A stretch of DNA of 64,000 nt from Macrostomum hystrix. Lineage: Eukaryota > Animalia > Platyhelminthes. Below, piece by piece: positions 18,602 to 52,009 of this stretch; within the stretch, counting starts at the first letter, position 1; every line of letters begins with the position of its first letter. The notes under the pieces are model-generated. The model made no database searches. It was not told the DNA's origin and saw only the letters and a list, made by a program, of their open reading frames with translations. The position numbers were made by a program, and so were the translations under genes. The stretch spans positions 1,364,001-1,428,000 of the forward strand of contig CATNEN010000029.1 of assembly GCA_950097015.1 (NCBI GenBank), written 5' to 3'.

Positions 18602-19138
18602 GTCAATCGCAAGGGACACGAGCATTGACCTGTAACACGCGAGCATGTCCCAGTTGCTATCCACTTTATTTATTTATATTGAGCCTTAATTAAGTGAGCC
18701 AAAGGTCGTGACAGTCTTGGCAATTCAAATCCCGAGTCAGCACATCTTTCGTCAGTCTGGTCCAGTCAAATCGAGCGGACGGGATTGATTGACACAGTCT
18801 AAAACTGAGATAAGATCCGGCGTACCTTGTGGCTAAAATAGCTCGTATTTGACTAAACTTATAACAGGCACCTAAACGGTTTTCATTGAAAGTGTGGAAA
18901 ACCTTGTTGTTGATCAGCTGAGCTATGAAGGTTTATAAGCATATTAGAAGAGCTACAGCATATATATAGTTAAGACAGGTCGTTAACATGTCAGATTATT
19001 TAATTCTCTATTTTGTGTGTTAGCGAGTATTTCGTGCGATCCATGCCAACAGCCTACCTATAGTAGAGTTGAATCAAAATATCAAGGAACTAAATTGAAG
19101 GAATTGTGTATTTCATTATTAAGATTGCTAGATTGATT

Positions 19139-22100
19139 GCTAGTATCTGGTCTAGTATGATGGCTAGTGTCTGGTCTAGTATGATGGCTAGTGTCTGGTC
19201 TAGTATGATGGCTAGTATCTGGTCTAGTATGATGGCTAGTATCTGGTCTAGTATGATGGCTAGTGTCTGGTCTAGTATGATGGCTAGTGTCTGGTCTAGT
19301 ATGATGGCTAGTATCTGGTCTAGTATGATGGCTAGTGTCTGGTCTAGTATGATGGCTAGTGTCTGGTCTACTATGATGGCTAGTGTCTGGTCTAGTATAA
19401 TTGCTAGTGTCTGGTCTAGTATGATGGCTAGTGTCTGGTCTAGTATAATGGCTAGTGTCTGGTCTAGTATGATGGCTAGTGTCTGGTCTAGTATAAAGGC
19501 TAGTGTCTGGTCTAGTATGATGTCTAGTGTCTGGTCTAGTATGATGGCTAGTGTCTGGTCTAGTATGATGGCTAGTGTCTGGTCTAGTATGATGGCTAGT
19601 GTCTGGTCTGGTATGATGGCTAGTGTCTGGTCTAGTATGATGGCTAGTATCTGGTCTAGTATGATGGCTAGTGTCTGGTCTAGTATGATGGCTAGTATCT
19701 GGTCTAGTATGATGGCTAGTGTCTGGTCTAGTATGATGGCTAGTGTCTGGTCTAGTATGATGGCTAGTGTCTGGTCTAGTATGATGGCTAGTGTCTGGTC
19801 TAGTATGATGGCTAGTATCTGGTCTAGTATGATGGCTAGTGTCTTGTCTAGTATGATGGCTAGTGTCTGGTCTAGTATGATGGCTAGTGTCTGGTCTAGT
19901 ATAATGGCTTATGTGGTCTAGTATGATGGCTAGTGTCTGGTCTAGTATAATGGCTTATGTGGTCTAGTATGATGGCTAGTATCTGGTCTAGTATGATGGC
20001 TAGAGTCTGGTCTAGTATGATGGCTAGTGTCTGGTCTAGTATAATTGCTAGTGTCTGGTCTAGTATGATGGCTAGTGTCTGGTCTAGTATAATGGCTAGT
20101 GTCTGGTCTAGTATGATGGCTAGTGTCTGGTCTAGTATGATGGCTAGTGTCTGGTCTACTATGATGGCTAGTGTCTGGTCTAGTACGAGCGTATGATGGC
20201 TAGTATCTGGTCTAGTATGATTGCTAGTATCTGGTCTAGTATGATGGCTAGTATCTGGTTTAGTATGATGGCTAGTATCTGGTCTAGTATGATGGCTAGT
20301 ATCTGGTCTAGTATGATGGCTAGTATCTGGTATAGTATGATGGCTAGTGTCTGGTCTACTATGATGGCTAGTGTCTGGTCTAGTATAATTGCTAGTGTCT
20401 GGTCTAGTATGATGGCTAGTGTCTGGTCTAGTATAATGGCTAGTGTCTGGTCTAGTATGATGGCTAGTGTCTGGTCTAGTATAAAGGCTAGTGTCTGGTC
20501 TAGTATGATGTCTAGTGTCTGGTCTAGTATGATGGCTAGTGTCTGGTCTAGTATGATGGCTAGTGTCTGGTCTAGTATGATGGCTAGTGTCTGGTCTGGT
20601 ATGATGGCTAGTGTCTGGTCTAGTATGATGGCTAGTATCTGGTCTAGTATGATGGCTAGTGTCTGGTCTAGTATGATGGCTAGTATCTGGTCTAGTATGA
20701 TGGCTAGTGTCTGGTCTAGTATGATGGCTAGTGTCTGGTCTAGTATGATGGCTAGTGTCTGGTCTAGTATGATGGCTAGTGTCTGGTCTAGTATGATGGC
20801 TAGTATCTGGTCTAGTATGATGGCTAGTGTCTTGTCTAGTATGATGGCTAGTGTCTGGTCTAGTATGATGGCTAGTGTCTGGTCTAGTATAATGGCTTAT
20901 GTGGTCTAGTATGATGGCTAGTGTCTGGTCTAGTATAATGGCTTATGTGGTCTAGTATGATGGCTAGTATCTGGTCTAGTATGATGGCTAGAGTCTGGTC
21001 TAGTATGATGGCTAGTGTCTGGTCTAGTATAATTGCTAGTGTCTGGTCTAGTATGATGGCTAGTGTCTGGTCTAGTATGATGGCTAGTGTCTGGTCTAGT
21101 ATGATGGCTAGTGTCTGGTCTACTATGATGGCTAGTGTCTGGTCTAGTATAATTGCTAGTGTCTGGTCTAGTATAATGGCTAGTGTCTGGTCTAGTATAA
21201 TGGCTAGTGTCTGGTCTAGTATGATGGCTAGTGTCTGGTCTAGTATAAAGGCTAGTGTCTGGTCTAGTATGATGGCTAGTGTCTGGTCTAGTATGATGGC
21301 TAGTGTCTGGTCTAGTATGATGGCTAGTGTCTGGTCTAGTATGATGGCTAGTGTCTGGTCTGGTATGATGGCTAGTGTCTGGTCTAGTATGATGGCTAGT
21401 ATCTGGTCTAGTATGATGGCTAGTGTCTGGTCTAGTATGATGGCTAGTATCTGGTCTAGTATGATGGCTAGTGTCTGGTCTAGTATGATGGCTAGTGTCT
21501 GGTCTAGTATGATGGCTAGTGTCTGGTCTAGTATGATGGCTAGTATCTGGTCTAGTATGATGGCTAGTATCTGGTCTAGTATGATGGCTAGTGTCTGGTC
21601 TAGTATGATGGCTAGTGTCTGGTCTAGTATGATGGCTAGTATCTGGTTTAGTATGATGGCTAGTATCTGGTCTAGTATGATGGCTAGTATCTGGTCTAGT
21701 ATGATGGCTAGTATCTGGTATAGTATGATGGCTAGTATCTGGTCTAGTATGATGGCTAGTGTCTGGTCTAGTACGAGCGTATGATGGCTAGTATCTGGTC
21801 TAGTACGAGCGTATGATGGCTAGTATCTGGTCTAGTATGATGGCTAGTGTCTGGTCTAGTACGAGCGTATGATGGCTAGTATCTGGTCTAGTATGATGGC
21901 TAGTGTCTGGTCTAGTATGATGGCTAGTATCTGGTCTAGTATGATGGCTAGTGTCTGGTCTAGAATGATGGCTAGTATCTGGTCTAGTATGATGGCTAGT
22001 GTCTTGTCTAGTATGATGCTAAGGGTCTGTTCTAGTATGATGGCTAGTGTCTGGTCTAGTATGATGGCTAGTGTCTGGTCTAGTATAGTGGCTTATGTGG

Positions 22101-25100
22101 TCTAGTATGATGGCTAGTGTCTGGTCTAGTATAATGGCTTATGTGGTCTAGTATGATGGCTAGTGTCTGGTCTAGTATAATGGCTTATGTGGTCTAGTAT
22201 GATGGCTAGTGTCTGGTCTAGTATAATGGCTTATGTGGTCTAGTATGATGGCTAGTATCTGGTCTAGTATGATGGCTAGTGTCTTGTCTAGTATGATGCT
22301 AAGGGTCTGTTCTAGTATGATGGCTAGTGTCTGGTCTAGTATGATGGCTTATGTGGTCTAGTATGATGGCTAGTGTCTGGTCTAGTATAATGGCTTATGT
22401 GGTCTAGTATGATGGCTAGTGTCTGGTCTAGTATAATGGCTTATGTGGTCTAGTATGATGGCTAGTGTCTGGTCTAGTATAATGGCTTATGTGGTCTAGT
22501 ATGATGGCTAGTGTCTGGTCTAGTATAATGGCTTATGTGGTCTAGTATGATGGCTAGTGTCTGGTCTAGTATAATGGCTTATGTGGTCTAGTATGATGGC
22601 TAGTGTCTGGTCTAGTATAATGGCTTATGTGGTCTAGTATGATGGCTAGTGTCTGGTCTAGTATAATGGCTTATGTTGGTCTAGTATGATGGCTAGTATC
22701 TGGTCTAGTATGATGGCTAGTGTCTTGTCTAGTATGATGGCTAGTGTCTGGTCTAGTATGATGGCTAGTGTCTGGTCTAGTATAATGGCTTATGTGGTCT
22801 AGTATGATGGCTAGTGTCTGGTCTAGTATAATGGCTTATGTGGTCTAGTATGATGGCTAGTATCTGGTCTAGTATGATGGCTAGTGTCTGGTCTAGTATG
22901 ATGGCTAGTGTCTGGTCTAGTATGATGGCTAGTGTCTTGTCTAGTATGATGCTAAGGGTCTGGTCTAGTATGATGGCTAGTATCTGGTCTAGTATGATGG
23001 CTAGTGTCTGGTCTAGTATGATGGCTAGTGTCTGGTCTAGTATGATGGCTAGTATCTGGTCTAGTATGATGGCTAGTGTCTGGTCTAGTATGATGGCTAG
23101 TATCTGGTCTAGTATGATGCTAAGGGTCTGTTCTAGTATGATGCTAAGGGTCTTGTCTAGTATGATGTCTAGTGTCTGGTCTAGTATGATGGCTAGTGTC
23201 TGGTCTAGTATGATGGCTAGTGTCTGGTCTAGTATAATGGCTTATGTGGTCTAGTATGATGGCTAGTGTCTGGTCTAGTATAATGGCTTATGTGGTCTAG
23301 TATGATGGCTAGTATCTGGTCTAGTATGATGGCTAGTGTCTTGTCTAGTATGATGCTAAGGGTCTGTTCTAGTATGATGGCTAGTATCTGGTCTAGTATG
23401 ATGGCTTATGTGGTCTAGTATGATGGCTAGTGTCTGGTCTAGTATAATGGCTTATGTGGTCTAGTATGATGGCTAGTGTCTGGTCTAGTATAATGGCTTA
23501 TGTGGTCTAGTATGATGGCTAGTGTCTGGTCTAGTATAATGGCTTATGTGGTCTAGTATGATGGCTAGTGTCTGGTCTAGTATAATGGCTTATGTGGTCT
23601 AGTATGATGGCTAGTGTCTGGTCTAGTATAATGGCTTATGTGGTCTAGTATGATGGCTAGTGTCTGGTCTAGTATAATGGCTTATGTGGTCTAGTATGAT
23701 GGCTAGTGTCTGGTCTAGTATAATGGCTTATGTGGTCTAGTATGATGGCTAGTATCTGGTCTAGTATGATGGCTAGTGTCTTGTCTAGTATGATGGCTAG
23801 TGTCTGGTCTAGTATGATGGCTAGTGTCTGGTCTAGTATAATGGCTTATGTGGTCTAGTATGATGGCTAGTGTCTGGTCTAGTATAATGGCTTATGTGGT
23901 CTAGTATGATGGCTAGTATCTGGTCTAGTATGATGGCTAGTGTCTGGTCTAGTATGATGGCTAGTGTCTGGTCTAGTATGATGGCTAGTGTCTTGTCTAG
24001 TATGATGCTAAGGGTCTGGTCTAGTATGATGGCTAGTATCTGGTCTAGTATGATGGCTAGTGTCTGGTCTAGTATGATGGCTAGTGTCTGGTCTAGTATG
24101 ATGGCTAGTATCTGGTCTAGTATGATGGCTAGTGTCTGGTCTAGTATGATGGCTAGTATCTGGTCTAGTATGATGCTAAGGGTCTGTTCTAGTATGATGC
24201 TAAGGGTCTTGTCTAGTATGATGTCTAGTGTCTGGTCTAGTATGATGGCTAGTGTCTGGTCTAGTATGATGGCTAGTGTCTGGTCTAGTATGATGGCTAG
24301 TATCTGGTCTAGTATGATGGCTAGTGTCTGGTCTAGTATAAAGGCTAGTGTCTGGTCTAGTATGATGTCTAGTGTCTGGTCTAGTATGATGGCTAGTGTC
24401 TGGTCTAGTATGATGGCTAGTATCTGGTCTAGTATGATGCTAAGGGTCTGGTCTAGTATGATGCTAAGGGTCTGTTCTAGTATGATGGCTAGTGTCTGGT
24501 CCAGTATGATGGCTAGTATCTGGTCTAGTATGATGGCTAGTGTCTGGTCTAGTATGATGGCTAGTATCTGGTCTAGTATGATGGCTAGTGTCTGGTCTAG
24601 TATAAAGGCTAGTGTCTGGTCTAGTATGATGTCTAGTGTCTGGTCTAGTATGATGGCTAGTGTCTGGTCTAGTATGATGGCTAGTATCTGGTCTAGTATG
24701 ATGCTAAGGGTCTGGTCTAGTATGATGCTAAGGGTCTGTTCTAGTATGATGGCTAGTGTCTGGTCTAGTATGATGGCTAGTGTCTTGTCTAGTATGATGC
24801 TAAGGGTCTGTTCTAGTATGATGGCTAGTGTCTGGTCTAGTATAATGGCTTATGTGGTCTAGTATGATGGCTAGTGTCTGGTCTAGTATAATGGCTTATG
24901 TGGTCTAGTATGATGGCTAGTGTCTGGTCTAGTATAGTGGCTTATGTGGTCTAGTATGATGGCTAGTGTCTGGTCTAGTATAATGGCTTATGTGGTCTAG
25001 TATGATGGCTAGTGTCTGGTCTAGTATAGTGGCTTATGTGGTCTAGTATGATGGCTAGTGTCTGGTCTAGTATAATGGCTTATGTGGTCTAGTATGATGG

Positions 25101-25252
25101 CTAGTGTCTGGTCTAGTATAATGGCTTATGTGGTCTAGTATGATGGCTAGTGTCTGGTCTAGTATAATGGCTTATGTGGTCTAGTATGATGGCTAGTGTC
25201 TGGTCTAGTATGATGGCTAGTATCTGCTCTATAGTATGATGGCTAGTGTCTG
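19139..25252. repeat. 24-bp minisatellite (gctagtgtctggtctagtatgatg)n, ~255 copies, with 23-bp variant units and higher-order duplications
   Basis: Continuous array with variant units (gcttatgtgg, gctaagggtc, ataaag, tacgagcg) that recur in blocks. Confidence 0.97.
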
Positions 25253-26107
25253 ATGTAGTTTTTGAGCTACATCAAAGGTTTTGGAGTATATATTTTACGG
25301 TACACGTCAAACAAGCCCTGTCAAACAGCCACTTATTATTCAGGCATTGTTGCTACAAAACTCGTGCAACGAATATTTTTAAGCGGCATGTGCCTAGCAT
25401 TATTGTTTACCAATAAAACAGCTCAGTTATCTAGACCAGTTGAGACATTAAGGGGTTTTCTGTACTACCTATAGACTTATTGCAGACTATCATTTCAATG
25501 GTTTTCACGTGTGCGCCCCGAAAGCCATAAAAAAGAATTGTCTTCATCTTGTCTAGCCGATAGTCTCTTCAATTTGCAGCATCGAAACTGTTGTTGTTTT
25601 GCATTTTCTTCAACGAAAACGTGCCCCAGCTACTCACGTGCACATTGTTGCTGCTGCTGCGTTAATGCTCGGTGCTATGCTCAAGTTTGCTCAAAAACAC
25701 TCTACTGTGGTTGAGCTTTAGTTAGATAAACTAGTCTTATGGCACAATAGGTGAAGGGCGTTGCTGCATGGAAGAGCCTGTCAGGTGTGCTGGGGAGTCG
25801 CTCGAGTGGCGAGATGCGCCTCCATTGTTGTGGCTCCCGTCGCACGTTTTCTGCTCTGACTCGTGTCGAAGCAGCATGGACACGAGGCCCCCCCCTGCTC
25901 GGCTCAGCTATTTGTGTCTCATACTCCTTCTGTTTTTGAGCCACCTATGGGTAAGGGCAGTTGTTGGTAGTGAAGCACACACACACGGTATATTCCACTA
26001 TATTTATTTGTTTTCCACGACCTTAAAAGCACAAAAGCGCGACGGCGCTGCAGTTTTGTCGATTAGAAAACGATTAAGAACTTCGATCTTCGACTTCGCC
26101 TTTCGAC

Positions 26108-29100
26108 ATGAGGCTCCCAGGCCTCAATTTGGTGAGTCCATGCCGTTTTGTTGGTAGGTTTTCTCATTTTCCTGACTTGTTAAGCTTCTTTTTGTGGCCA
26201 GTTTCCTTCATTTCCTTCCTCTGATTGAGGTTGGTATCAGAAAATCTTCCCTGATTAGGCGGTCCGAAACGATACATCAGATTTTCGTTTGCGCTCAAGA
26301 GAAAATCACTCCAGAGCTCTAAGCTGTGTTGATAATGTCATTTAGACTCATCAACTTCTTTTTGAGTCCATAGTAGCGAAACAGCTGCGTGAGAACGCAA
26401 CACTTGGGAGGGGAGGGAAATGAGCTGAGGTCACCTGGCCGGGTTGCTATGGTTTTAACTACGAGTGCATAACAGCGAAAATCTGTTTGTATGCATGTTA
26501 TTGGACGCACTGTAACGAGTGTATTGTCCTCGTCATTTTTTGACATTAGGACTCGAAGCAAGCGAGGAGGCAATTCTGCTCATTTCGCTGACTCCTGAGC
26601 ACACGCGAACAAAGATACTGTACGCAGTCACAAGCTCACATAGGTGTTGTACATGTTGCCCTGACTTTCTCGTCATCAATGAGAAAGGCGTTGGCCCTCA
26701 ATGGCGTAAATTGCATTGTAAATTGCAATGTATGAGTGTAAACGAGCGTTTACTAAATTATGCACTCTCCGATCTGCAGCAGCTTCCGGCCATCCTGGCG
26801 CTGATGTTATTCGCATTGGCATCCTACGCCGCTAGCACCGCGGATGAGCCGACCACGTACACTGAGACGGTAATTACTGAGGGAGCGCCTGAGGTGTCAA
26901 GCAGCCACATTGAAGTGGTGGAGCACAGCGGCTGGAGGTGAGAGAGCTGGTACTAAAGATGTCGGTTAGTCGGTTATTCGGTTTTGAGAGCTATCGAGAA
27001 GTAGGCGGTGGGTATTTGAAATACCCCCATGGTCTACTGTTAGCTAACTGCAAAGTGTCTTCGTTAAATCGCTTTCTGGTATGAGTTCTTTTAGTGATGC
27101 CGAAACACGCGAACCGTCTACTTGCAGCTCGAGCGTCAAGGATTTTCTAAAAGATTCCAAGATCAGCGACATGCCTATGAGCGATCTCGGTGGCAGCCTG
27201 GTACTGGCCGTGGACAAAACTGCCGTCTCCAAGACATTGAAGAAGTACATCATGGACGCCATGAAGAGGCTCCCAGTGAATTCTAAGGGCATCAAGATTG
27301 GCTTTGTGGAGTACACGGACCGGCCGTACACAGTTGTGTCTCTGAAGGAGGTAAGCCTGAAACTAAACGACTAGAGAGCAGTTTAAAATGGAGTGATTGT
27401 TCAATTTACAGTTCCGGCCAGTACATTGATATCTAATGTTGTATAAAAACATGCTCTGATCTGTAGGGCGCGTCACTGGAACAAGTCATGGCCAAGCTCG
27501 ACCAGGAGCTGCAGTCAAAGAGTTCCCACTCAAAGACAGACGTCAAGGTGTTTGACTACGTCGGACTACAGGCCGCCTATAACGAGCTGCAAAAGTTCAG
27601 CCCGTCCACCAAGCCGCGGATTGTGATGCTGATCAGCTCCGGGAAGGACGCTGACAAGAAGAAGTCTGACGAATTGCGCGAAAAGCTGGCGAAGGAGTTT
27701 ATCAGCCTCTCCGAGGTTGTTGTCGACTCCTCCAGGTGAGCTCTATTTAGTGGCGCAAACAGATCCTTCGAGCATGTTCAAACTCATTGCAATAAATTTT
27801 CCACTAAAATTCGAACCTTTCAGTGGCAGCTTCGGCGTCATTGAAAGCGGCAAAACGACGTCGACAGATGAGACAATCCACGAGAGCTCTTTCATAACCA
27901 GCCTTCTAAAGTCTTACAGTAAGTTTTGGCTTTGCTTCAGAGCGACTGATCTCTGATTTGGTCGTCATGAGACAAAATATTTTTTCACTGATGTTTCAAA
28001 AATGATTTCAGGCCACTCCACAATCCAGTACTACAAGAAGCTCTATGGCGAGGTGTGGGAGTTCTACATAATGCTGAAGCACTACAAAAAGATTTACCCC
28101 ACGGATTGGATTACGCACTTAAAGACATGGTTTAGCAACAAGTACGGCAGCTCCGCCAAGTTTGAAAGTTATTTGCATCGCGCAAAAGATGAGTCGGGCA
28201 CAATCTCTCCAGAGGAGCAGAAGAAAAAAGAATTCAAAGATAAGTACGGATCCGAGTGGGAAAATCACTTCCTGATTTGGAAGTACAAGAAGCAATTCGG
28301 CTCTAAGTGGGAAGAGCACTACGAGCAGCACACAATGAAGAAAAAGTATGGAAAAAACTGGTTCTCGGAGTGGGAGAAGCTGCGTTTCAAAAAGAAATAC
28401 GGAGGCAAATGGGAGCCACATTATGTTAAATGGTACTTTAAAAAGTACCGTGGAGCAACCTGGATTTACAGCTGGATGAAATGGCAGTTCAGGCAAAAGC
28501 ACAAAGAAGGCAGCAAAGCATATATCAATAATTTCATGCGATGGTACTACAAGTACACGAAAAAAGGCGACAAGGAGTTTAGCAAATGGAAATCAACAAT
28601 GAAAGCCCTATCGCCTAACGAAATAGAAAAGAGATTCAGATGGTTCTACTACAACCTTGTGTTCCAGAAAAAGCAAGCTTTAATAAAGTACAACAAATGG
28701 TTCTATCGAAAAACGCTCGGAAAAAAGTACATCGTAAAATACAACCAGTGGCTCAAACAAATAAACAAAAACACAAACTGGATCAAAGATTTCAAGAAGA
28801 TGCAGTCAAAACTGTCATTCAACTTAAAATGGAACACGAAAAAAAGCAAGACAGAGAAGAAGTCAGTAATCTGGTTTATTAAGCACTACGGACGCAACTG
28901 GCGCTGGTACTACCAGAGAGTGATCTACCGTCGTCGCTTCGGAGCCAAGTGGCGTGTGCACTTCAACAAGTGGCAGAAGACCGTGTGGAAGAAGCCCGCT
29001 CCGAAACGCCGTCGCATTGTCGTGCACAAGGTCACATGGTACAGGAAGCGCTACGGACGCAACTGGCGCTGGTACTACCAGAGAGTGATCTACCGTCGTC

Positions 29101-32100
29101 GCTTCGGAGCCAAGTGGCGTGTGCACTTCAACAAGTGGCAGAAGACCGTGTGGAAGAAGCCTGCTCCGAAACGCCGTCGCATTGTCTTGCACAAGGTCAC
29201 ATGGTACAGGAAGCGCTACGGACGCAACTGGCGCTGGTACTACCAGAGAGTGATCTACCGTCGTCGCTTCGGAGCCAAGTGGCGTGTGCACTTCAACAAG
29301 TGGCAGAAGACCGTGTGGAAGAAGCCCGCTCCGAAACGCCGTCGCATTGTCGTGCACAAGGTCACATGGTACAGGAAGCGCTACGGACGCAACTGGCGCT
29401 GGTACTACCAGAGAGTGATCTACCGTCGTCGCTTCGGAGCCAAGTGGCGTGTGCACTTCAACAAGTGGCAGAAGACCGTGTGGAAGAAGCCCGCTCCGAA
29501 ACGCCGTCGCATTGTCGTGCACAAGGTCACATGGTACAGGAAGCGCTACGGACGCAACTGGCGCTGGTACTACCAGAGAGTGATCTACCGTCGTCGCTTC
29601 GGAGCCAAGTGGCGTGTGCACTTCAACAAGTGGCAGAAGACCGTGTGGAAGAAGCCCGCTCCGAAACGCCGTCGTATTGTCGTGCACAAGGTCACATGGT
29701 ACAGGAAGCGCTACGGACGCAACTGGCGCTGGTACTACCAGAGAGTGATCTACCGTCGTCGCTTCGGAGCCAAGTGGCGTGTGCACTTCAACAAGTGGCA
29801 GAAGACCGTGTGGAAGAAGCCCGCTCCGAAACGCCGTCGCATTGTCGTGCACAAGGTCACATGGTACAGGAAGCGCTACGGACGCAACTGGCGCTGGTAC
29901 TACCAGAGAGTGATCTACCGTCGTCGCTTCGGAGCCAAGTGGCGTGTGCACTTCAACAAGTGGCAGAAGACCGTGTGGAAGAAGCCCGCTCCGAAACGCC
30001 GTCGTATTGTCGTGCACAAGGTCACATGGTACAGGAAGCGCTACGGACGCAACTGGCGCTGGTACTACCAGAGAGTGATCTACCGTCGTCGCTTCGGAGC
30101 CAAGTGGCGTGTGCACTTCAACAAGTGGCAGAAGACCGTGTGGAAGAAGCCCGCTCCGAAACGCCGTCGCATTGTCGTGCACAAGGTCACATGGTACAGG
30201 AAGCACTACGGACGCAACTGGCGCTGGTACTACCAGAGAGTGATCTACCGTCGTCGCTTCGGAGCCAAGTGGCGTGTGCACTTCAACAAGTGGCAGAAGA
30301 CCGTGTGGAAGAAGCCCGCTCCGAAACGCCGTCGCATTGTCGTGCACAAGGTCACATGGTACAGGAAGCGCTACGGACGCAACTGGCGCTGGTACTACCA
30401 GAGAGTGATCTACCGTCGTCGCTTCGGAGCCAAGTGGCGTGTGCACTTCAACAAGTGGCAGAAGACCGTGTGGAAGAAGCCTGCTCCGAAACGCCGTCGC
30501 ATTGTCGTGCACAAGGTCACATGGTACAGGAAGCGCTACGGACGCAACTGGCGCTGGTACTACCAGAGAGTGATCTACCGTCGTCGCTTCGGAGCCAAGT
30601 GGCGTGTGCACTTCAACAAGTGGCAGAAGACCGTGTGGAAGAAGCCCGCTCCGAAACGCCGTCGCATTGTCGTGCACAAGGTCACATGGTACAGGAAGCG
30701 CTACGGACGCAACTGGCGCTGGTACTACCAGAGAGTGATCTACCGTCGTCGCTTCGGAGCCAAGTGGCGTGTGCACTTCAACAAGTGGCAGAAGACCGTG
30801 TGGAAGAAGCCCGCTCCGAAACGCCGTCGCATTGTCGTGCACAAGGTCACATGGTACAGGAAGCGCTACGGACGCAACTGGCGCTGGTACTACCAGAGAG
30901 TGATCTACCGTCGTCGCTTCGGAGCCAAGTGGCGTGTGCACTTCAACAAGTGGCAGAAGACCGTGTGGAAGAAGCCCGCTCCGAAACGCCGTCGCATTGT
31001 CGTGCACAAGGTCACATGGTACAGGAAGCGCTACGGACGCAACTGGCGCTGGTACTACCAGAGAGTGATCTACCGTCGTCGCTTCGGAGCCAAGTGGCGT
31101 GTGCACTTCAACAAGTGGCAGAAGACCGTGTGGAAGAAGCCCGCTCCGAAACGCCGTCGCATTGTCGTGCACAAGGTCACATGGTACAGGAAGCGCTACG
31201 GACGCAACTGGCGCTGGTACTACCAGAGAGTGATCTACCGTCGTCGCTTCGGAGCCAAGTGGCGTGTGCACTTCAACAAGTGGCAGAAGACCGTGTGGAA
31301 GAAGCCCGCTCCGAAACGCCGTCGCATTGTCGTGCACAAGGTCACATGGTACAGGAAGCGCTACGGACGCAACTGGCGCTGGTACTACCAGAGAGTGATC
31401 TACCGTCGTCGCTTCGGAGCCAAGTGGCGTGTGCACTTCAACAAGTGGCAGAAGACCGTGTGGAAGAAGCCTGCTCCGAAACGCCGTCGCATTGTCGTGC
31501 ACAAGGTCACATGGTACAGGAAGCGCTACGGACGCAACTGGCGCTGGTACTACCAGAGAGTGATCTACCGTCGTCGCTTCGGAGCCAAGTGGCGTGTGCA
31601 CTTCAACAAGTGGCAGAAGACCGTGTGGAAGAAGCCCGCTCCGAAACGCCGTCGCATTGTCGTGCACAAGGTCACATGGTACAGGAAGCGCTACGGACGC
31701 AACTGGCGCTGGTACTACCAGAGAGTGATCTACCGTCGTCGCTTCGGAGCCAAGTGGCGTGTGCACTTCAACAAGTGGCAGAAGACCGTGTGGAAGAAGC
31801 CCGCTCCGAAACGCCGTCGCATTGTCGTGCACAAGGTCACATGGTACAGGAAGCGCTACGGACGCAACTGGCGCTGGTACTACCAGAGAGTGATCTACCG
31901 TCGTCGCTTCGGAGCCAAGTGGCGTGTGCACTTCAACAAGTGGCAGAAGACCGTGTGGAAGAAGCCCGCTCCGAAACGCCGTCGCATTGTCGTGCACAAG
32001 GTCACATGGTACAGGAAGCGCTACGGACGCAACTGGCGCTGGTACTACCAGAGAGTGATCTACCGTCGTCGCTTCGGAGCCAAGTGGCGTGTGCACTTCA

Positions 32101-35100
32101 ACAAGTGGCAGAAGACCGTGTGGAAGAAGCCCGCTCCGAAACGCCGTCGCATTGTCGTGCACAAGGTCACATGGTACAGGAAGCGCTACGGACGCAACTG
32201 GCGCTGGTACTACCAGAGAGTGATCTACCGTCGTCGCTTCGGAGCCAAGTGGCGTGTGCACTTCAACAAGTGGCAGAAGACCGTGTGGAAGAAGCCCGCT
32301 CCGAAACGCCGTCGCATTGTCGTGCACAAGGTCACATGGTACAGGAAGCGCTACGGACGCAACTGGCGCTGGTACTACCAGAGAGTGATCTACCGTCGTC
32401 GCTTCGGAGCCAAGTGGCGTGTGCACTTCAACAAGTGGCAGAAGACCGTGTGGAAGAAGCCCGCTCCGAAACGCCGTCGCATTGTCGTGCACAAGGTCAC
32501 ATGGTACAGGAAGCGCTACGGACGCAACTGGCGCTGGTACTACCAGAGAGTGATCTACCGTCGTCGCTTCGGAGCCAAGTGGCGTGTGCACTTCAACAAG
32601 TGGCAGAAGACCGTGTGGAAGAAGCCCGCTCCGAAACGCCGTCGCATTGTCGTGCACAAGGTCACATGGTACAGGAAGCGCTACGGACGCAACTGGCGCT
32701 GGTACTACCAGAGAGTGATCTACCGTCGTCGCTTCGGAGCCAAGTGGCGTGTGCACTTCAACAAGTGGCAGAAGACCGTGTGGAAGAAGCCCGCTCCGAA
32801 ACGCCGTCGCATTGTCGTGCACAAGGTCACATGGTACAGGAAGCGCTACGGACGCAACTGGCGCTGGTACTACCAGAGAGTGATCTACCGTCGTCGCTTC
32901 GGAGCCAAGTGGCGTGTGCACTTCAACAAGTGGCAGAAGACCGTGTGGAAGAAGCCCGCTCCGAAACGCCGTCGCATTGTCGTGCACAAGGTCACATGGT
33001 ACAGGAAGCGCTACGGACGCAACTGGCGCTGGTACTACCAGAGAGTGATCTACCGTCGTCGCTTCGGAGCCAAGTGGCGTGTGCACTTCAACAAGTGGCA
33101 GAAGACCGTGTGGAAGAAGCCCGCTCCGAAACGCCGTCGCATTGTCGTGCACAAGGTCACATGGTACAGGAAGCGCTACGGACGCAACTGGCGCTGGTAC
33201 TACCAGAGAGTGATCTACCGTCGTCGCTTCGGAGCCAAGTGGCGTGTGCACTTCAACAAGTGGCAGAAGACCGTGTGGAAGAAGCCCGCTCCGAAACGCC
33301 GTCGCATTGTCGTGCACAAGGTCACATGGTACAGGAAGCGCTACGGACGCAACTGGCGCTGGTACTACCAGAGAGTGATCTACCGTCGTCGCTTCGGAGC
33401 CAAGTGGCGTGTGCACTTCAACAAGTGGCAGAAGACCGTGTGGAAGAAGCCCGCTCCGAAACGCCGTCGCATTGTCGTGCACAAGGTCACATGGTACAGG
33501 AAGCGCTACGGACGCAACTGGCGCTGGTACTACCAGAGAGTGATCTACCGTCGTCGCTTCGGAGCCAAGTGGCGTGTGCACTTCAACAAGTGGCAGAAGA
33601 CCGTGTGGAAGAAGCCCGCTCCGAAACGCCGTCGCATTGTCGTGCACAAGGTCACATGGTACAGGAAGCGCTACGGACGCAACTGGCGCTGGTACTACCA
33701 GAGAGTGATCTACCGTCGTCGCTTCGGAGCCAAGTGGCGTGTGCACTTCAACAAGTGGCAGAAGACCGTGTGGAAGAAGCCCGCTCCGAAACGCCGTCGC
33801 ATTGTCGTGCACAAGGTCACATGGTACAGGAAGCGCTACGGACGCAACTGGCGCTGGTACTACCAGAGAGTGATCTACCGTCGTCGCTACGGAGCCAAGT
33901 GGCGTGTGCACTTCAACAAGTGGCAGAAGACCGTGTGGAAGAAGCCCGCTCCGAAACGCCGTCGCATTGTCGTGCACAAGGTCACATGGTACAGGAAGCG
34001 CTACGGACGCAACTGGCGCTGGTACTACCAGAGAGTGATCTACCGTCGTCGCTTCGGAGCCAAGTGGCGTGTGCACTTCAACAAGTGGCAGAAGACCGTG
34101 TGGAAGAAGCCCGCTCCGAAACGCCGTCGCATTGTCGTGCACAAGGTCACATGGTACAGGAAGCGCTACGGACGCAACTGGCGCTGGTACTACCAGAGAG
34201 TGATCTACCGTCGTCGCTTCGGAGCCAAGTGGCGTGTGCACTTCAACAAGTGGCAGAAGACCGTGTGGAAGAAGCCCGCTCCGAAACGCCGTCGCATTGT
34301 CGTGCACAAGGTCACATGGTACAGGAAGCGCTACGGACGCAACTGGCGCTGGTACTACCAGAGAGTGATCTACCGTCGTCGCTTACGGAGCCAAGTGGCG
34401 TGTGCACTTCAACAAGTGGCAGAAGACCGTGTGGAAGAAGCCCGCTCCGAAACGCCGTCGCATTGTCGTGCACAAGGTCACATGGTACAGGAAGCGCTAC
34501 GGACGCAACTGGCGCTGGTACTACCAGAGAGTGATCTACCGTCGTCGCTTCGGAGCCAAGTGGCGTGTGCACTTCAACAAGTGGCAGAAGACCGTGTGGA
34601 AGAAGCCCGCTCCGAAACGCCGTCGCATTGTCGTGCACAAGGTCACATGGTACAGGAAGCGCTACGGACGCAACTGGCGCTGGTACTACCAGAGAGTGAT
34701 CTACCGTCGTCGCTTCGGAGCCAAGTGGCGTGTGCACTTCAACAAGTGGCAGAAGACCGTGTGGAAGAAGCCCGCTCCGAAACGCCGTCGCATTGTCGTG
34801 CACAAGGTCACATGGTACAGGAAGCGCTACGGACGCAACTGGCGCTGGTACTACCAGAGAGTGATCTACCGTCGTCGCTTCGGAGCCAAGTGGCGTGTGC
34901 ACTTCAACAAGTGGCAGAAGACCGTGTGGAAGAAGCCCGCTCCGAAACGCCGTCGCATTGTCGTGCACAAGGTCACATGGTACAGGAAGCGCTACGGACG
35001 CAACTGGCGCTGGTACTACCAGAGAGTGATCTACCGTCGTCGCTTCGGAGCCAAGTGGCGTGTGCACTTCAACAAGTGGCAGAAGACCGTGTGGAAGAAG

Positions 35101-35697
35101 CCCGCTCCGAAACGCCGTCGCATTGTCGTGCACAAGGTCACATGGTACAGGAAGCGCTACGGACGCAACTGGCGCTGGTACTACCAGAGAGTGATCTACC
35201 GTCGTCGCTTCGGAGCCAAGTGGCGTGTGCACTTCAACAAGTGGCAGAAGACCGTGTGGAAGAAGCCCGCTCCGAAACGCCGTCGTATTGTCGTGCACAA
35301 GGTCACATGGTACAGGAAGCGCTACGGACGCAACTGGCGCTGGTACTACCAGAGAGTGATCTACCGTCGTCGCTTCGGAGCCAAGTGGCGTGTGCACTTC
35401 AACAAGTGGCAGAAGACCGTGTGGAAGAAGCCCGTTCCGAAACGCCGTCGTCGAATTGTTTGGTTGCATCGTGCTTCTCCGCGCCGGTGGCACTATTACG
35501 TCAAGCGCACTGCCTTTAGGAGGCGTCGAGTGATTTCGCCGCAAGCTAATTTTTACAAGAAGCGCTACGGCTCAAACTGGCTATGGTTTTTCACTCGTGC
35601 CCTTTACCATCGTCGCTACGGCTCTGCGTGGGAGAGTCACTTTAATCGGTGGGCGGCGAGGGTTTGGCGTCGGCCGGCGCCCACCGCCGGTCGTTGA
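26108..35697 (+). CDS. Secreted VWA-like-domain protein with giant Arg/Lys/Trp/Tyr-rich tandem-repeat tail (~2817 aa if the 1-bp insertion near 34385 is removed)
   Basis: Phase-compatible GT-AG exons: 26108-26131, 26780-26937, 27128-27350, 27467-27735, 27824-27918, 28012-35697. The N-terminus MRLPGLNLQLPAILALMLFALASYAASTA-DE is signal-peptide-like. VWA-like strands: LVLAVDKT, IKIGFVEYTD, RIVMLISSG. These are followed by 17-aa aromatic repeats and 40 x 55-aa units, with TGA at 35695-35697. Exon 1 is the least certain. Confidence 0.8.
26542..26715 (-). mobile_element. Partial diverged copy of the tRNA-derived SINE body, in intron 1 of the VWA-repeat gene
   Basis: agcgaggaggcaattctgctcatttcgctgactcctgagcacac...gccctgactttctc...ggcgtaaattgca aligns with about 56860-57050. 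Confidence 0.8.
28887..35455 (+). repeat. Coding tandem array: 40 copies of a 165-bp unit (55 aa: YGRNWRWYYQRVIYRRRFGAKWRVHFNKWQKTVWKKPAPKRRRIVVHKVTWYRKR)
   Basis: tacggacgc starts at 28887, 29052, ... 35323, which is 39 periods of 165 plus one inserted base. Only scattered single-base variants occur. Confidence 0.97.
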
Positions 35698-36144
35698 GTC
35701 CAGATCTTCTGTGGCGTAACATGTTTGGGTCTTCGCATCCGTCGTGGCGGTAGAGCCGTCAGTATGTTCGAAAATGGCGTTGAATTTTTTTAGTAAACAA
35801 CAATTTACAAGTAGTATTTTTTCTTCTTCTAATTAAAAAAAATGCATATTACGAGTATAACCATACTTGTGAAAGTTTAAAGTTTTTTTTACGAACCTGC
35901 TGTAGTCATCAATCGACCATGCTTCAAGTGCTTCTTGATTGACTTATCGTTAGTACAGTTAGTACAAGCAGCTGAAAATGTGTCAAGTAAGGGTAGGCCT
36001 GTTGCACAATTTTTTTTGTTTAAATGTTACCGAAAAAATAAAATAACACGTTTTTTTGCGGTTTTAGGCTTTATTCACTAAAAAAATTCTCTCTGCTGTT
36101 TGCACGTGACTTTTAGTTGTCACACATTTTAGGATTGACTGAGG

Positions 36145-36570
36145 AATCGTAACTAGAATCGAATGAACAATCCAAGCTAGAATCGAATGAAGATTCGAAG
36201 CTGGAATCGAATGAAGAATCGAAACTAGAATCGAATTAAGAATCGAAGCTAGAATCTAATGAAGAATCGAAGCTAGAATCGAATGAAGAATCCAAGCTAG
36301 AATCTAATGAAGAATCGAAGCTAGAATCGAATGAAGAATCCAAGCTAGAATCGAATGAAGAATCCAAGCTAGAATCGAAAAAATAATCGCAGCTAGAATC
36401 GAATGAAGAATCGAAGCTAAAATCGAATGAAGAATCCAAGCTAGAATCGAATGAAGAATCGAAGCTAGAATCGAATGAAGAATCCAAGCTAGAATCGAAT
36501 GAAGAATCGAAGCTAGAACCGAATGAAGAATCGCAGCTAGAATCGAATGAAGAATCGAAGCTAGAATCAG
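36145..36570. repeat. 24-bp minisatellite (aagaatcgaagctagaatcgaatg)n, ~17 copies
   Basis: Period read directly; the minus-strand DSSFDSSL ORF is a by-product. Confidence 0.93.
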
Positions 36571-37139: not shown

Positions 37140-37730
37140 GTTGGAGGGAGAGGAAGAGGGAGAGGAAGAGTGAGAGGGTGTGGGAGAGGGAGAGGTTGTG
37201 GGAGAGGAAGAGGGTGTGGGAGAGGAATAGGGTGTGGGAGAGGATGAGGTTGTGGGAGAGAAAGAGGGTGTGGGAGAGGAAGAGGGTGTGGGATAGGGAG
37301 AGGGTGTGGGATAGGGAGAGGGTGTGGGAGAGGGAGAGGGTGTGGGAGAGGGAGAGGGTGTGGGAGAGGGAGAGGGTGTGGGATAGGGAGAGGGTGTGGG
37401 AGAGGGAGAGGGTGTGGGATAGGGAGAGGGTGTGGGATAGGGAGAGGGTGTGGGATAGGGAGAGGGTGTGGGAGAGGGAGAGGGTGTGGGAGAGGGAGAG
37501 GGTGTGGGATAGGGAGAGGGTGTGGGAGAGGAAGAGGATGTGGGAGAGGAAGAGGGTGTGGGAGAGGAAGAGGATGTGGGAGAGGAAGAGGATGTGGGAG
37601 AGGAAGAGGGTGTGGGATAGGGAGAGGATGTGGGAGAGGAAGAAGGTGTGGGAGATGAAGAGGGTGTGGGAGAGGAAGAGGGTGTGGGATAGGGAGAGGG
37701 TGTGGGAGAGGAAGAGGTTGTGGGAGAGAA
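37140..37730. repeat. 18-bp purine-rich minisatellite (gagagggtgtgggagagg)n, ~32 copies
   Basis: The period of 18 gives WERERV / LSHTLS repeat ORFs. Confidence 0.93.
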
Positions 37731-39585: not shown

Positions 39586-40140
39586 GTTCTACTCTAGCAA
39601 CCTGTAGTCTACCCTAGCAACCTAGAGTCTACCCTAGCAACCTAGAATCTTCCATAGCACCCTAAAATCTCCCCAAGCACCCTAGAATCTTCCATAGCAC
39701 CCTAAAATCTTCCCTAGCACCCTAGAAGCTTCCCTAGCACCCTAGAATATCCCCAAGCACCCTATAATCTCCCCAAGCACCCTAGAATCTTCCATAGCAC
39801 CCTAGAATCTTCCCAAGCACCCTAAAATCTTCCCTAGCACCCTAGAATCTTCCCTAGCACCCTAGAATCTCCCCAAGCACCCTAGAATCTTCCCTAGCAC
39901 CCTAGAATCTCCCCTAGCACCCTAGAATCTCCCCTAGCACCCTAGAATCTCCCTAGCACCCTAGAATCTCCCCAAGCACCCTAGAATCTTCCCTAGCACC
40001 CTAGAATCTCCCCTAGCACCCTAGAATCTCCCCTAGCACCCTAGAATCTCCCCTAGCACCCTAGAATCTCCCCTAGCACCCTAGAATCTCCCCTAGCACC
40101 CTAGAATCTTCCCTAGCACCCTAGAATCTCCCCTAGCAGC
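39586..40140. repeat. 20-bp minisatellite (ccctagcaccctagaatctc)n, ~27 copies
   Basis: Period read directly. Confidence 0.95.
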
Positions 40141-40802
40141 CTATGATATACCGAAAAGAAATTTTCAGTACAGGTTGAAAGTTTATTTTCTGTATCCCAG
40201 AGGTGCACCGGCCGCTTTGAGTCTGCGGCTTATTTTCGTGTCCAGAAAAGGCGTTTCCTCAGAAGCGCGGCTTTCGTACTTGATTTTAGTATCCAATTTC
40301 TTCAAGTTCAAAATACTTCGCTAGGCATTCTTGAAGCCGCAGAGAAGGGACGACGTGGCTTTTGGGCGTGGTACTTTTACCAACCCAGGCTGGCCAATGA
40401 GCTCAGGAATCAATACCCGTCTGCGCTTCGCCTTATGCTAAAGAGTAGCTGCCGGCCGATAGAAGTGCTTTTGGCAACTGCGAACTAGTCGAAGGATACC
40501 ACGGGGCATAATCTGCAAATGGGTCCCTGCTTAGTACCACAGCCTGATCGATACCCAGAGCAAAAGTAAGTTTGAAACGGCAGGAAAAAATCGGTTAGAG
40601 TGAGAGACTCTCCGGCTAAACCCGGAAACTGCAGCCCCGAGGGTTTCTAGGAATCCAGATTCAGGTGACAAACTTATTTTGCTCTAAGCAGGTATAAACC
40701 GTAGTGGCATTTAATCGTCTATTTACTAATTCTATCTATATATTACTTGCAGGTGATACTTTATCGGTTAACGAAACGATTGCATATACAATCAGTACAA
40801 AT

Positions 40803-41365
40803 CTGAAATCCCATCTAGCTACTGAAATCCCATCTAGCTACTGAAATCCCACATAGCTACTGAAATCCCATCTAGCTACTGAAATCCCATCTAGCTACTG
40901 AAATCCCATCTTGCTAATGAAATACCATCTAGCTACTGAAATCCCATCTAGCTACTGAAATCGCATCTAGCTACTGAAATCCCATCTAGCTACTGAAATC
41001 CCATCTAGCTACTGAAATCCCATCTAGCTACTGAAATCCCAGATAGCTACTGAAATCCCATCTAGCTACTGAAATCCCATCTAGCTACTGAAATCCCATC
41101 TTGCTAATGAAATTCCATCTAGCTACTGAAATCCCATCTAGCTACTGAAATCCCAGATAGCTACTGAAATCCCATCTAGCTACTGAAATCCCATCTAGCT
41201 ACTGAAATCCCATCTTGCTAATGAAATTCCATCTAGCTACTGAAATCCCATCTAGCTACTGAAATCCCAGATAGCTACTGAAGTCCCATGTTGCTACTGA
41301 AATCCCATCTTGCTAATGAAATCCCATCTAGCTAATGAAATACCATCTAGCTACTGAAATCCCAA
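40803..41365. repeat. 19-bp minisatellite (ctgaaatcccatctagcta)n, ~29 copies
   Basis: tgaaa occurs at 40804, 40823, 40842, 40861, ... Confidence 0.95.
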
Positions 41366-42887: not shown

Positions 42888-44324
42888 ATGTCGGACGCTG
42901 GCCTCAACTGCACTGCCAACGCAATCGCCTTGGCATTCAACCGCATCAGTCTGCCGCTGATTGTCATCATCTCCGTGATCTCAATACTGTTGAATGTGTT
43001 CAACATACTGATCTTCAGCAAGAAGAAGATGATATCGCCAACTAACAGCATCCTGTTGGGCATAGCTGTCAGCGACCTCATCAAGGTTCTGATGTTCCTA
43101 GTGACGTCAGTTGTACCGCTTGACCAGATGAGCCACTGGTATGACTACCAGGTATTTTACCTGTTCTGCAACGTGGCCATGTACCTGATGCACGCCTTCG
43201 CGCTCTGGTGCGGCGTCCTGCTGGCCTTGTTCCGCTTCTTCTACCTGCGCTATTACGCATCGAGCAGGACCAAGGTGTGGTTCAGCCTGTCCCGTGCACG
43301 ACTGGCCGTCTGTCTCGCCTTCCTGGCCAACCTTGTAGCCGTGGCGCCCTACGCTGGCAGCCTGCAGATCATCGGCTATAACGACACTCACAATGTCACT
43401 GGCGAGGGCGGCCACGCGCGCATCATGTATAGCCCTAGTTTGGACACGCGGCACGAGTTCAAAATACGCCTATTCAACGGTCTGGCACAGAAGGTGCTGC
43501 CCTGCCTCATCATGACCTGCTTCTGCTTCTTCATCATCAAGAGCCTGCGTCAGACTGAGAAACGTCGCGAATCGCTCGTCAATCTCAACAGTCGGCATTC
43601 GAAGACGAGCGAAGCCAACCGCAGCTCCAGCAGCCGACGCTGCGAGAGCGTCACCAATTCCGACATCGAGACGGCGGCACCGCTGCCGTCGCCGTCTCCG
43701 CAGCACTCGCTAGCGCAGCTGCAGACGCCGCCGACGTCCACGCAAGGTCCGCGCTCGTCCAGAGGCTCGGCTAAGCGAAATTCTCGACGCGAGCGCCGGT
43801 CAAGAGATCACAGGCGTACCACTAGCTTCCTTCTGGTGATCATTATGCTGTACATCCTTTACGAGATCCCCATGAGCCTGCTGAACATCCTCGAGGATCC
43901 CATCTTCAACCTGCCTGGCGTGCAATGCTTCTTTCGCTACTTCATTCGCATGCTGAACACACTGGGCCTGATCAACAACTCGGTGAATTTCGTGCTTTAT
44001 TGCTTCATGAGCAAGCAGTTCCGCGAGGTGTTCAAGCACATGTTCGGGCTAGTCTGCTTCCTACAGCCGAAGGCCAATACCAGTTCGGCCAGGGCAGCAG
44101 CTTCCGGCGTCGCTGGCGCCTCGGTCGGCATCGATCGGCCCAAGCGAAGACGCCGCGGCACCGACAACAGCTCGCGTAGCGGCGGCGGCGGTGGTCGAGG
44201 CGGCGGCGGCGGAGGCGGCGGACTGATACCGTTGACGTCGGCGTCCTTCCGCTCCGTCGGAGACGATGATCGGTCTCGTTTCAGCGTGTCCGAAGGTCCC
44301 AGCAACGCATTCTACGATCCGTGA
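42888..44324 (+). CDS. Intronless rhodopsin-class neuropeptide GPCR, srw/FMRFamide-myosuppressin (dmsr)-like, 478 aa
   Basis: Seven hydrophobic segments. Motifs: ISPTNSILLGIAVSDL (TM2), LALFRF in place of DRY, QKVLPCLIM (TM5), LYEIP (TM6), NNSVNFVLYCFMSKQFR (TM7/H8). There is an N-terminal NCT sequon and a long Ser/Arg-rich ICL3. Confidence 0.9.
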   Translation: MSDAGLNCTANAIALAFNRISLPLIVIISVISILLNVFNILIFSKKKMISPTNSILLGIAVSDLIKVLMFLVTSVVPLDQMSHWYDYQVFYLFCNVAMYLMHAFALWCGVLLALFRFFYLRYYASSRTKVWFSLSRARLAVCLAFLANLVAVAPYAGSLQIIGYNDTHNVTGEGGHARIMYSPSLDTRHEFKIRLFNGLAQKVLPCLIMTCFCFFIIKSLRQTEKRRESLVNLNSRHSKTSEANRSSSSRRCESVTNSDIETAAPLPSPSPQHSLAQLQTPPTSTQGPRSSRGSAKRNSRRERRSRDHRRTTSFLLVIIMLYILYEIPMSLLNILEDPIFNLPGVQCFFRYFIRMLNTLGLINNSVNFVLYCFMSKQFREVFKHMFGLVCFLQPKANTSSARAAASGVAGASVGIDRPKRRRRGTDNSSRSGGGGGRGGGGGGGGLIPLTSASFRSVGDDDRSRFSVSEGPSNAFYDP

Positions 44325-45459: not shown

Positions 45460-45720
45460 CGGAGCATGAGCAGTAGCTCGTATCGCAGCATGAGTAGTAG
45501 TAGCTGGTATCGCAGTAGTAGGAGCAGTAGCTGGTATCGCAGTAGGAGCAGTAGCTGGTATCGCAGCAGGAGCAGTAGCTGGTATCGGAGCATGAGCAGT
45601 AGTAGGTGGTATCGCAGCATGAGCAGTAGTAGCTGGTATCGCAGCAGGAGCAGTAGCTGGTATCGCACCAGGAGCAGTAGCTGGGTATCGCAGCAGGCGC
45701 AGTAGTAGCTGGTATCGCTG
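45460..45720. repeat. 24/27-bp repeat (agcagtagctggtatcgcagcagg)n, ~10 copies
   Basis: Recurring agtagctggtatcgc. Confidence 0.88.
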
Positions 45721-45739
45721 CGAATTTTATCGCTAGATA

Positions 45740-51575: not shown

Positions 51576-52009
51576 AATTCTGAAATGCAGGATCTTACAA
51601 AGGGCTGCTTAACCTGAGCGCAACATACAGCCTAAATATATATTAAAAAAAACTCGAAATCACAAAGTCAGTGGAACACGCAGACATGGCCCGTGTCATG
51701 TTAATAAAGGACAGATGAAGACAGTCTCAGGTAATCTATTAATTGCAACAAAAGCTTTGACTACATATATACGACCCCCAGCTAGGCCTAAGTTTCGGTC
51801 TGCGTCTGTTGCTTCCGCTATAAGGGCTCTTATTCAGCCGACATACAATTAAACTAATGTAACAGGCCAATGAACTTCAACGCAGCTTGTAAAAGTACAA
51901 TGGAAAATCGCTTTCCATTTTAAATACCAAAGCTGCGAAGAGTTAGATTTTTTTTATTTTAAAAAACCTAGCATTTTAAATTTCCAATAAATGAGTATTT
52001 TAAATACTT

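Follow-up and report, generated by a model that had tools for sequence, protein, structure and literature searches.

The window analyzed here, a stretch of 64,000 nucleotides from the flatworm Macrostomum hystrix (assembly GCA_950097015.1, contig CATNEN010000029.1, positions 1,364,001 to 1,428,000 of the forward strand), contains a long array of 165-bp tandem units, and it raises the question of whether the array is the coding tail of a real protein and, if so, what such a protein might do. An initial annotation of the letters alone had proposed at 26108-35697 a single spliced gene for a secreted protein with a signal peptide, a von Willebrand factor type A (VWA)-like domain, aromatic 17-residue repeats and 40 copies of a 55-residue unit. 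All coordinates given below are positions in the window, and features lie on the plus strand unless stated otherwise. We found that the gene is real, expressed and spliced, and that its mRNA is abundant. The order of its product is a signal peptide, a short acidic linker, the VWA-like domain, an aromatic region with a 17-residue period and forty 55-residue units, and we tentatively read this product as a secreted polycationic scaffold or adhesive.

Six exons between 26108 and 35697 (+) give one open frame, the continuity of which is subject to a single A at 34385 that is taken up below, and the five introns are all GT-AG. Exon 1 (26108..26131) begins the coding sequence with the ATG at 26108 and specifies only the initial 8 signal-peptide residues, and exon 2 (26780..26937) encodes the remaining signal peptide and an acidic linker rich in Ser and Thr. 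The two halves of the VWA-like domain are encoded by exon 3 (27128..27350) and exon 4 (27467..27735), and a further Ser/Thr-rich linker, for which Pfam returned no family, by exon 5 (27824..27918). Exon 6 (28012..35697) holds the aromatic region, the array and its degenerate end.

We aligned the contigs of four RNA runs to positions 25800-29000. All five junctions, including 26131/26780 with its GT..AG ends, 26937/27128, both junctions of exon 4 and those of exon 5, were represented by spliced contigs in both X4 and X5 at exactly the predicted positions, and one of them was also present in X1; the splicing predicted by the initial annotation was thus recovered in RNA. The contigs of X4 and X5 start at 25956 and continue into exon 1, giving a 5’ untranslated region that extends at least over 25956..26107, and on reading the sequence beyond the stop codon we place a probable 3’ untranslated region, with ATTAAA at 35832-35837, at 35698..35860. 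Except for short repeat-like pieces, the RNA runs left the introns uncovered, and the runs had a word share of 0.53-0.54, which equals the exon fraction of the query; for these two reasons the runs represent cDNA and not genomic DNA or a retrocopy. The repeat assembled as a circular RNA contig of 195 nt with depths of 1324 and 2429, compared to 50 and 82 in the unique part of exon 6. The resulting 26-30-fold excess over the unique exons is what an mRNA with tens of repeat copies should give. Within introns 1 and 2, the stretches 26550-26606 and 26983-27042 showed summed RNA-contig depths of hundreds to thousands, made up of partial, mismatched and loose-ended matches of 40-57 nt; these stretches probably derive from a dispersed repeat that is highly expressed, and do not belong to this mRNA. 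Rfam gave no match on 25000-29000.

The array occupies 28881..35481 of exon 6 and consists of 40 units of 165 bp (55 residues), the last of which diverges after about base 135. For 28881-35450, Tandem Repeats Finder reported 39.8 copies of a 165-bp unit with 99% matches and, at the resolution of the tool, no indels. Using the first 25 bases of the unit as an anchor, we located 40 unit starts, spaced by 165 bp throughout with the exception of one spacing of 166 bp. The copy number proposed initially was confirmed in this way, and so were the residue counts per unit, which agree exactly: 12 Arg, 8 Lys, 2 His, 6 Trp, 5 Tyr and 2 Phe, with no Asp, Glu or Cys. Nucleotide sequences are identical in 29 of the 40 units and the remaining units vary at five sites only, comprising two synonymous sites (seven occurrences) and three sites of conservative replacement (R>H, V>L and F>Y). 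Units 1-2 share one pair of variants with units 9-10, suggesting a duplication with an offset of 8 units. Older, diverged unit-like sequence is found on both flanks of the 40-unit array. Lys and Arg make up 36% of the array and Trp, Tyr and Phe 24%; acidic residues are absent and the computed isoelectric point (pI) is 12. A [YF]G..W motif recurs within the unit at a spacing of 17 and then 38 residues, so that the unit, which contains the 17-residue motif in three copies, can be written as 17+17+21.

The long open reading frame (ORF) of the array is by itself no evidence for coding, because further frames of the array are open in the window too, at 28949-34534 on the plus strand (1,861 codons) and at 28863-34307 on the minus strand (1,814 codons). 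Both of these are by-products of the stop-free 165-bp period. Four lines of evidence fix the coding frame: the continuity of splicing; the unit lengths, which are multiples of three both here (165 bp) and in the related arrays of Macrostomum lignano (159 bp); the differences between consensus units, which fall 7/9/16 on codon positions 1/2/3; and the M. lignano array, which lacks long ORFs in the other frames or on the other strand. The minus strand of that array has short ORFs only, and one frame alone is open in both genomes.

The sole hydrophobic segment of the product lies at residues 3-29; it follows a basic start and has small residues before the likely cleavage site. An equivalent leader is present in P0002, one of the M. 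lignano relatives described below. The N-terminus is therefore of a secretory type with a cleavable-looking signal peptide, in keeping with the signal peptide proposed initially, and the protein is predicted to be secreted. Residues 1-60 have a pI of 4.3.

The assignment of the next domain, which extends over exons 3-5, was examined on exon 3 and on exon 4 separately. Exon 3 covers strand A, helix 1 and strands B and C, and in a phmmer search with this exon alone all 17 of 17 PDB matches were VWA domains, among them COL6A3 (4.3e-6) and the A1 domain of von Willebrand factor (vWF; 2.3e-3), with the alignment to collagen VI alpha-3 and vWF A1 spanning helix 1 and strands B and C. Exon 4 gave no PDB sequence match with phmmer or with a two-row profile. 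Among its best named look-alikes in the ESM atlas are VWA clusters at 0.91, the ten best family-bearing matches all (10/10) belong to the VWA family or clan, and the recognition value was 2849, which is above the benchmark of the tool. The metal-ion-dependent adhesion site (MIDAS) is degenerate: in place of D-x-S-x-S after strand A, the product has D-K-T-A-V-S and P0002 has D-K-N-A-I-S. The domain is probably a metal-independent VWA, as is vWF A1. These comparisons support the VWA-like domain of the initial annotation and place the product in the VWA superfamily by way of a single divergent domain that lacks a MIDAS. Compared to our RNA-verified model, the public model P0002 lacks the end of the VWA-like domain as well as its strands B and C, and this gap is probably a gene-prediction error.

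The first part of exon 6 (28012..28880) encodes a 290-residue aromatic and basic region, in which the [YF]G..W motif recurs five times at a spacing of 17 residues, as the initial annotation had noticed. This region contains 24% Lys and Arg, 23% Trp, Tyr and Phe and still 8.6% Asp and Glu; its identity to P0002 is 68%, and long blocks of it are nearly invariant. AlphaFold2 modelled it as all-helical with a mean predicted local distance difference test score (pLDDT) of 68.5, including one 80-residue helix with pLDDT 78-90, and a predicted template modelling score of 0.35. A Foldseek comparison of this model with the PDB gave nothing at E below 1, and the ESM atlas gave 0.65-0.72, which is chance level, for both the units and the aromatic region. 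Pfam returned only sub-threshold matches on every piece of the product: VWA at 14 bits, and ILEI and CBP66, which are noise. The earlier impression of an unrecognized architecture is borne out to the extent that no characterized family matched the repeat parts in Pfam, the PDB, the fold comparison or the atlas. A likeness of the G-x-x-W-x-W-Y-Y stretch to choline-binding repeats was also considered and dropped, since Pfam gave no choline-binding, cell-wall, MORN or other aromatic-repeat family. Summed over its pieces, the product has about 2,816 residues with no Cys, an excess of Lys and Arg over Asp and Glu of about +856, and 8.6% Tyr, 14.5% Lys, 18% Arg and 9.5% Trp.

An exhaustive HMMER search of 1.84 billion representatives returned three true relatives, P0001, P0002 and P0003, all from M. 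lignano, and no match from any organism beyond M. lignano; an additional match, P0004, is noise. In a word-indexed protein search with a 399-residue query, P0002 was the sole match. As far as these searches reach, the family is confined to Macrostomum. P0002 is UniRef A0A1I8FLB2 (A0A1I8FLB2_9PLA), which bears the automatic name ‘CARD domain-containing’, a name without Pfam support. P0001 lies on NIVC01000086.1 and P0003 at the start of NIVC01000087.1 (both GCA_002269645.1). The leader and aromatic region are 61-71% identical to those of the M. lignano relatives, and the M. lignano copies have 77-83% nucleotide identity to the gene in the window. The first M. lignano locus has at least 71 units of 159 bp, with a main unit of 53 residues, and the array on NIVC01000086.1 includes a higher-order trio, a-B-C, that contains a 55-residue variant and is repeated seven times. 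A degenerate C-terminal unit is found in both the M. lignano gene and the gene in the window. The two M. lignano arrays, at positions 1-11338 of locus L002 (NIVC01000086.1) and 1-6229 of locus L003 (NIVC01000087.1), are 94-96% alike, and the L003 copy opens a 950-kb contig in mid-array.

Downstream of the array, M. lignano and the window share the same Srw/rhodopsin-type G-protein-coupled receptor (GPCR) gene, and because of this shared neighbor the array loci are syntenic. In the window, the GPCR gene is an intron-less ORF of 478 residues at 42888-44324 (+) (Pfam 4.5e-32), and its M. lignano counterpart lies at L002:20860-21651. The two copies have 82% nucleotide and 88% amino-acid identity, with a ratio of nonsynonymous to synonymous divergence (dN/dS) of 0.073/0.874 = 0.084. 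The repeat peptide motif was found neither in the literature full text that was searched nor in the supplements of PMC6410801 and PMC5977470. Judged from the sequence records, the M. lignano homologues have public models that are fragmentary and misnamed and, as far as we found, they are undescribed. The novelty suggested by the initial annotation is thus upheld in that no characterized family matches the unit or the aromatic region, but the gene is not unique, in view of its uncharacterized M. lignano homologues.

The comparison of units shows what is preserved. In the four unit types compared from the two genomes, the invariant positions comprise all Trp, all Tyr/Phe positions, the two Gly, the two Pro and eight basic sites, while the remaining positions interchange among Lys, Arg, His, Gln, Thr and Asn. 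The dN/dS between consensus units was 0.153/0.652 = 0.23. M. lignano unit types B and C have only 58-71% nucleotide identity to type A, with dS above 2 or undefined (saturated), and retain the aromatic skeleton despite this saturation of silent sites. These comparisons show purifying selection at the protein level, which acts on the precise aromatic spacing and not on composition alone and which also preserves the charge. The array evolves in concert with a changing copy number, from 55 residues in 40 copies here to 53 residues in at least 71 copies in M. lignano.

We next weigh what such a protein might do. The reading that we favor, with a confidence that stops a little short of an even chance, is an intact secreted polycation that serves as a scaffold or adhesive and binds polyanions. 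The protein would be secreted whole and not cut into peptides. Its giant polycationic aromatic tail would serve to bind and condense polyanions, for example sulphated glycans, mucus, the glycocalyx or microbial surfaces, and a large number of weak contacts of the charge, cation-pi and pi-pi kinds would make it adhere to surfaces and to other copies of itself. Anchorage to a protein partner or to matrix may be provided by the VWA-like domain, and the number of units would set the valency. Minimal Trp/Arg peptides (W2R2, W3R3) are reported to form coacervates, either by themselves or together with ATP (PMC11323023). The rhabdites of planarians contain abundant sulphated glycosaminoglycans (PMC5450325), and by analogy such glycosaminoglycans would need a counter-ion, which lends some support to polyanion binding.

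Several points weigh against this proposal. Its mechanism is drawn from composition and from analogy. An AlphaFold2 model of four units with a 7-row alignment reached a mean pLDDT of 40.6 with strands and is unusable, and a hydrophobic-moment analysis of the unit was mixed, leaving helix versus strand undecided. The repeat motif is absent from the supplements of the M. lignano adhesion paper (PMC6410801), so that nothing in this source favors a role in the known adhesive organs. The VWA assignment rests on the two half-domain tests of exons 3 and 4, and on such fragments the Pfam score is sub-threshold, the 74-residue exon 3 fragment reaching 14 bits against a cut-off of 23.8. In the sequence as assembled, the frame of exon 1 exits the repeat frame at 34385, so that six units are out of frame and a stop is reached at 35519. 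If this break were real, the allele would end after about 33 units with an unrelated tail.

A bolder version of the intact polycation, which we regard as rather doubtful, is that the product founds a class of natural materials proteins that has so far gone undescribed: a giant, Cys-free polymer of Trp/Tyr and Arg/Lys, independent of 3,4-dihydroxyphenylalanine (DOPA), that acts as a gland granule scaffold, mucus condenser or adhesive. Such a protein would condense or glue itself by cation-pi and pi-pi contacts despite a net charge of about +850, and concerted evolution would tune the number of its units.

The initial annotation had also suggested that the array might release about 40 cationic peptides at the dibasic sites of each unit. 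In its full form, this alternative holds that convertases cut the array at basic sites into about 40 (in M. lignano at least 71) Trp/Arg-rich antimicrobial or bioactive peptides. The presence of many identical units in one expressed mRNA is in its favor, as are the conservation of K43-R44 and of the basic pair at the unit border in all unit types, the difference in copy number between the genomes, and a W/R-rich composition of the kind that is typical of antimicrobial peptides such as indolicidin or tritrpticin. However, the canonical furin site R-x-[KR]-R does not occur once in the four unit types of the two genomes, compared to shuffle means of 0.34-1.18 per unit, and the 8 dibasic pairs observed per unit are close to the 7.0 expected from composition, with similar results for the other unit types. 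Peptide release is weakened by these two results. In addition, the conserved Lys-Arg pair is followed by Pro in M. lignano unit type B, and acidic spacers, pro-pieces and Gly-basic amidation signals are all absent. The 17-residue motif also extends into a conserved, non-repeated and predicted-helical region joined to the VWA-like domain, an arrangement that suits a polymer better. We consider the release of peptides unlikely.

We hold a similarly low opinion of the possibility that the product is a structural precursor of eggshell, egg cement or another hardened secretion, covalently cured through Tyr/Lys cross-links made by phenoloxidase or tyrosinase. Cross-linking of this kind is known from the quinone-tanned proteins of flatworm eggshell and mussel byssus. 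The contents of Tyr (8.6%) and Lys (14.5%) in a secretory-type tandem-repeat protein fit such a precursor; tandem basic Tyr-rich repeats characterize mfp-1-type and trematode eggshell precursors, and VWA domains occur in byssal matrix proteins. The content of Trp (9.5-11%) and Arg (18-22%) is, on the other hand, atypical of known tanned precursors, and no Gly-rich or DOPA-context motifs were recognized in the product.

The frame break must be weighed for all of these proposals, as the presence of 40 units in one protein assumes that the A at 34385 is an error. This additional A, in the context CGCTT[A]CGG, makes unit 34 (34326-34491) 166 bp long and shifts the frame in the assembly. The break was not reported in the initial annotation; the gene structure it gave at 26108-35697 stands, but 35697 is reached in the +1 frame only, as the stop of the ORF 34402-35697. 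We kept the pieces before and after 34385 separate in all computations. The degenerate last units and the stop codon (35695-35697), at 35482..35697, lie in the +1 frame and align with the degenerate units at the C-terminus of the M. lignano gene. We think it quite likely that the extra A is a consensus artefact, for four reasons, the last of them weak: the affected codon is changed from TTC to TAC (TTC>TAC) in unit 31, so that TTAC resembles a merge of the TTC and TAC of other units; the +1 frame is open through six further units to a C-terminus conserved with M. lignano; and the M. lignano array in its assembly has a comparable single slip of 1 bp (a 158-bp spacing at L002:3102-3260). The fourth is that no sequencing run was listed with the 31-mers across the insertion in a search with a 60-nt query, a weak test in which 4 words were sampled and in which rare variants would be missed, as assemblers drop them. 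A decaying or neutral coding minisatellite, with a real frameshift in a recently broken copy and a truncated or useless product, would agree with the break in the assembly, with the tandem arrays that fill the window and with this lack of listed runs, but is very unlikely in view of the first three of these observations, the purifying selection between the genomes and the abundant, correctly spliced mRNA. What probability remains belongs to something other than a scaffold, a polyprotein, a cured precursor or a broken copy.

The surroundings of the gene contain further features. Upstream, a long open exon at 10758-13691 (+) encodes an LLGL (lethal giant larvae) domain (Pfam 1.5e-21) with traces of a WD40-like propeller. 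The window is packed with short-period satellites with units of 18-54 bp, at 16583-18328, 19134-25259, 36140-36568, 37146-37728 and 39608-40143, and further at 40803-41364, 45463-46468, 48079-49316 and 50021-54687. The repeats include 259 copies of a strongly GC-skewed 24-bp unit, the last of which lies about 700 bp before the point at which the transcript of the gene begins. The M. lignano locus is likewise followed by arrays, with units of 8, 23, 30 and 13 bp.

Among known systems, the proposed intact polycation would be comparable to Mlig-ap1, which provides the cohesion in the adhesive of M. lignano (Wunderer et al. 2019, PMC6410801). Mlig-ap1 consists of C-type lectin, vWD, C8, TIL and 17 EGF modules, with a core that contains 11% Cys, and of repetitive regions that are K/R-rich, extremely basic and more than 3,600 residues long and that bind negatively charged carbohydrates in adhesion (PMC6410801). 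Like Mlig-ap1, the product described here is a giant, secretory-type flatworm protein with long, extremely basic K/R-rich repeats. Unlike Mlig-ap1, it has a type-A (VWA-like) domain and no Cys, and no piece of it matched a lectin, vWD/C8/TIL or EGF family in Pfam. The initial annotation had said that the domain layouts differ, and the absence of Cys here against the Cys-rich lectin/vWD/EGF core there bears this out. Judged by the published peptide SRKPRRKNRKSRKP, the repeats of Mlig-ap1 are without the aromatic skeleton, and neither the exhaustive HMMER search nor the supplements of PMC6410801 gave any sequence similarity between Mlig-ap1 and the product. The relatives in M. lignano have the same unit skeleton and the same GPCR neighbor, and differ in the length of the main unit (53 versus 55 residues) and in the number of units (at least 71 versus 40).

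Mussel foot proteins (mfp-1, mfp-3, mfp-5) and the cement proteins of sandcastle worms are secreted, basic, Tyr-rich and often tandem-repeated, and they rely on cation-pi contacts and on coacervation with polyanions. They employ DOPA, contain little Trp, are either much smaller than the product or built of 10-residue units, and have no sequence relationship to it. The Trp/Arg antimicrobial peptides and the antimicrobial polyproteins (indolicidin and tritrpticin; apidaecin and the Baramicin type) are likewise W/R-rich or composed of many identical units. The product differs from the polyproteins in having no furin-type sites or acidic spacers and in joining its 55-residue units to a VWA-like domain and a helical region. 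Among VWA proteins, exon 3 aligns with collagen VI alpha-3 and vWF A1, and the MIDAS of vWF A1 is non-canonical as well, whereas the VWA matrix proteins differ from the product, which has a single divergent domain and no collagenous or other matrix modules.

Giant secreted polycations are central to the temporary adhesion of flatworms, as Mlig-ap1 exemplifies, and cation-pi contacts are a major theme in wet adhesion and in condensates. A tail of more than 2,200 residues with about 11% Trp, 9% Tyr and 36% Arg and Lys, with no acidic residue and no Cys, is an unusual combination, and as its aromatic spacing is also strictly conserved between the genomes, the protein lends itself naturally to the study of folding, condensation and sticking in aromatic polymers of like charge. 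The gene provides a concrete, expressed candidate for an uncharacterized gland secretion of Macrostomum, and its ortholog is directly testable in M. lignano, for which RNA interference, in situ hybridization and transgenesis are available. Should the product prove to be just another repetitive gland protein of a single lineage, its interest would be modest, since secreted proteins of this sort are common. By analogy, the product may work most like Mlig-ap1 and the basic partners in polyelectrolyte glues, yet it is a member of neither family. We suggest that it is kin in kind to the giant secreted polycationic repeat proteins of invertebrate glands, with repeat parts that belong to no described family.

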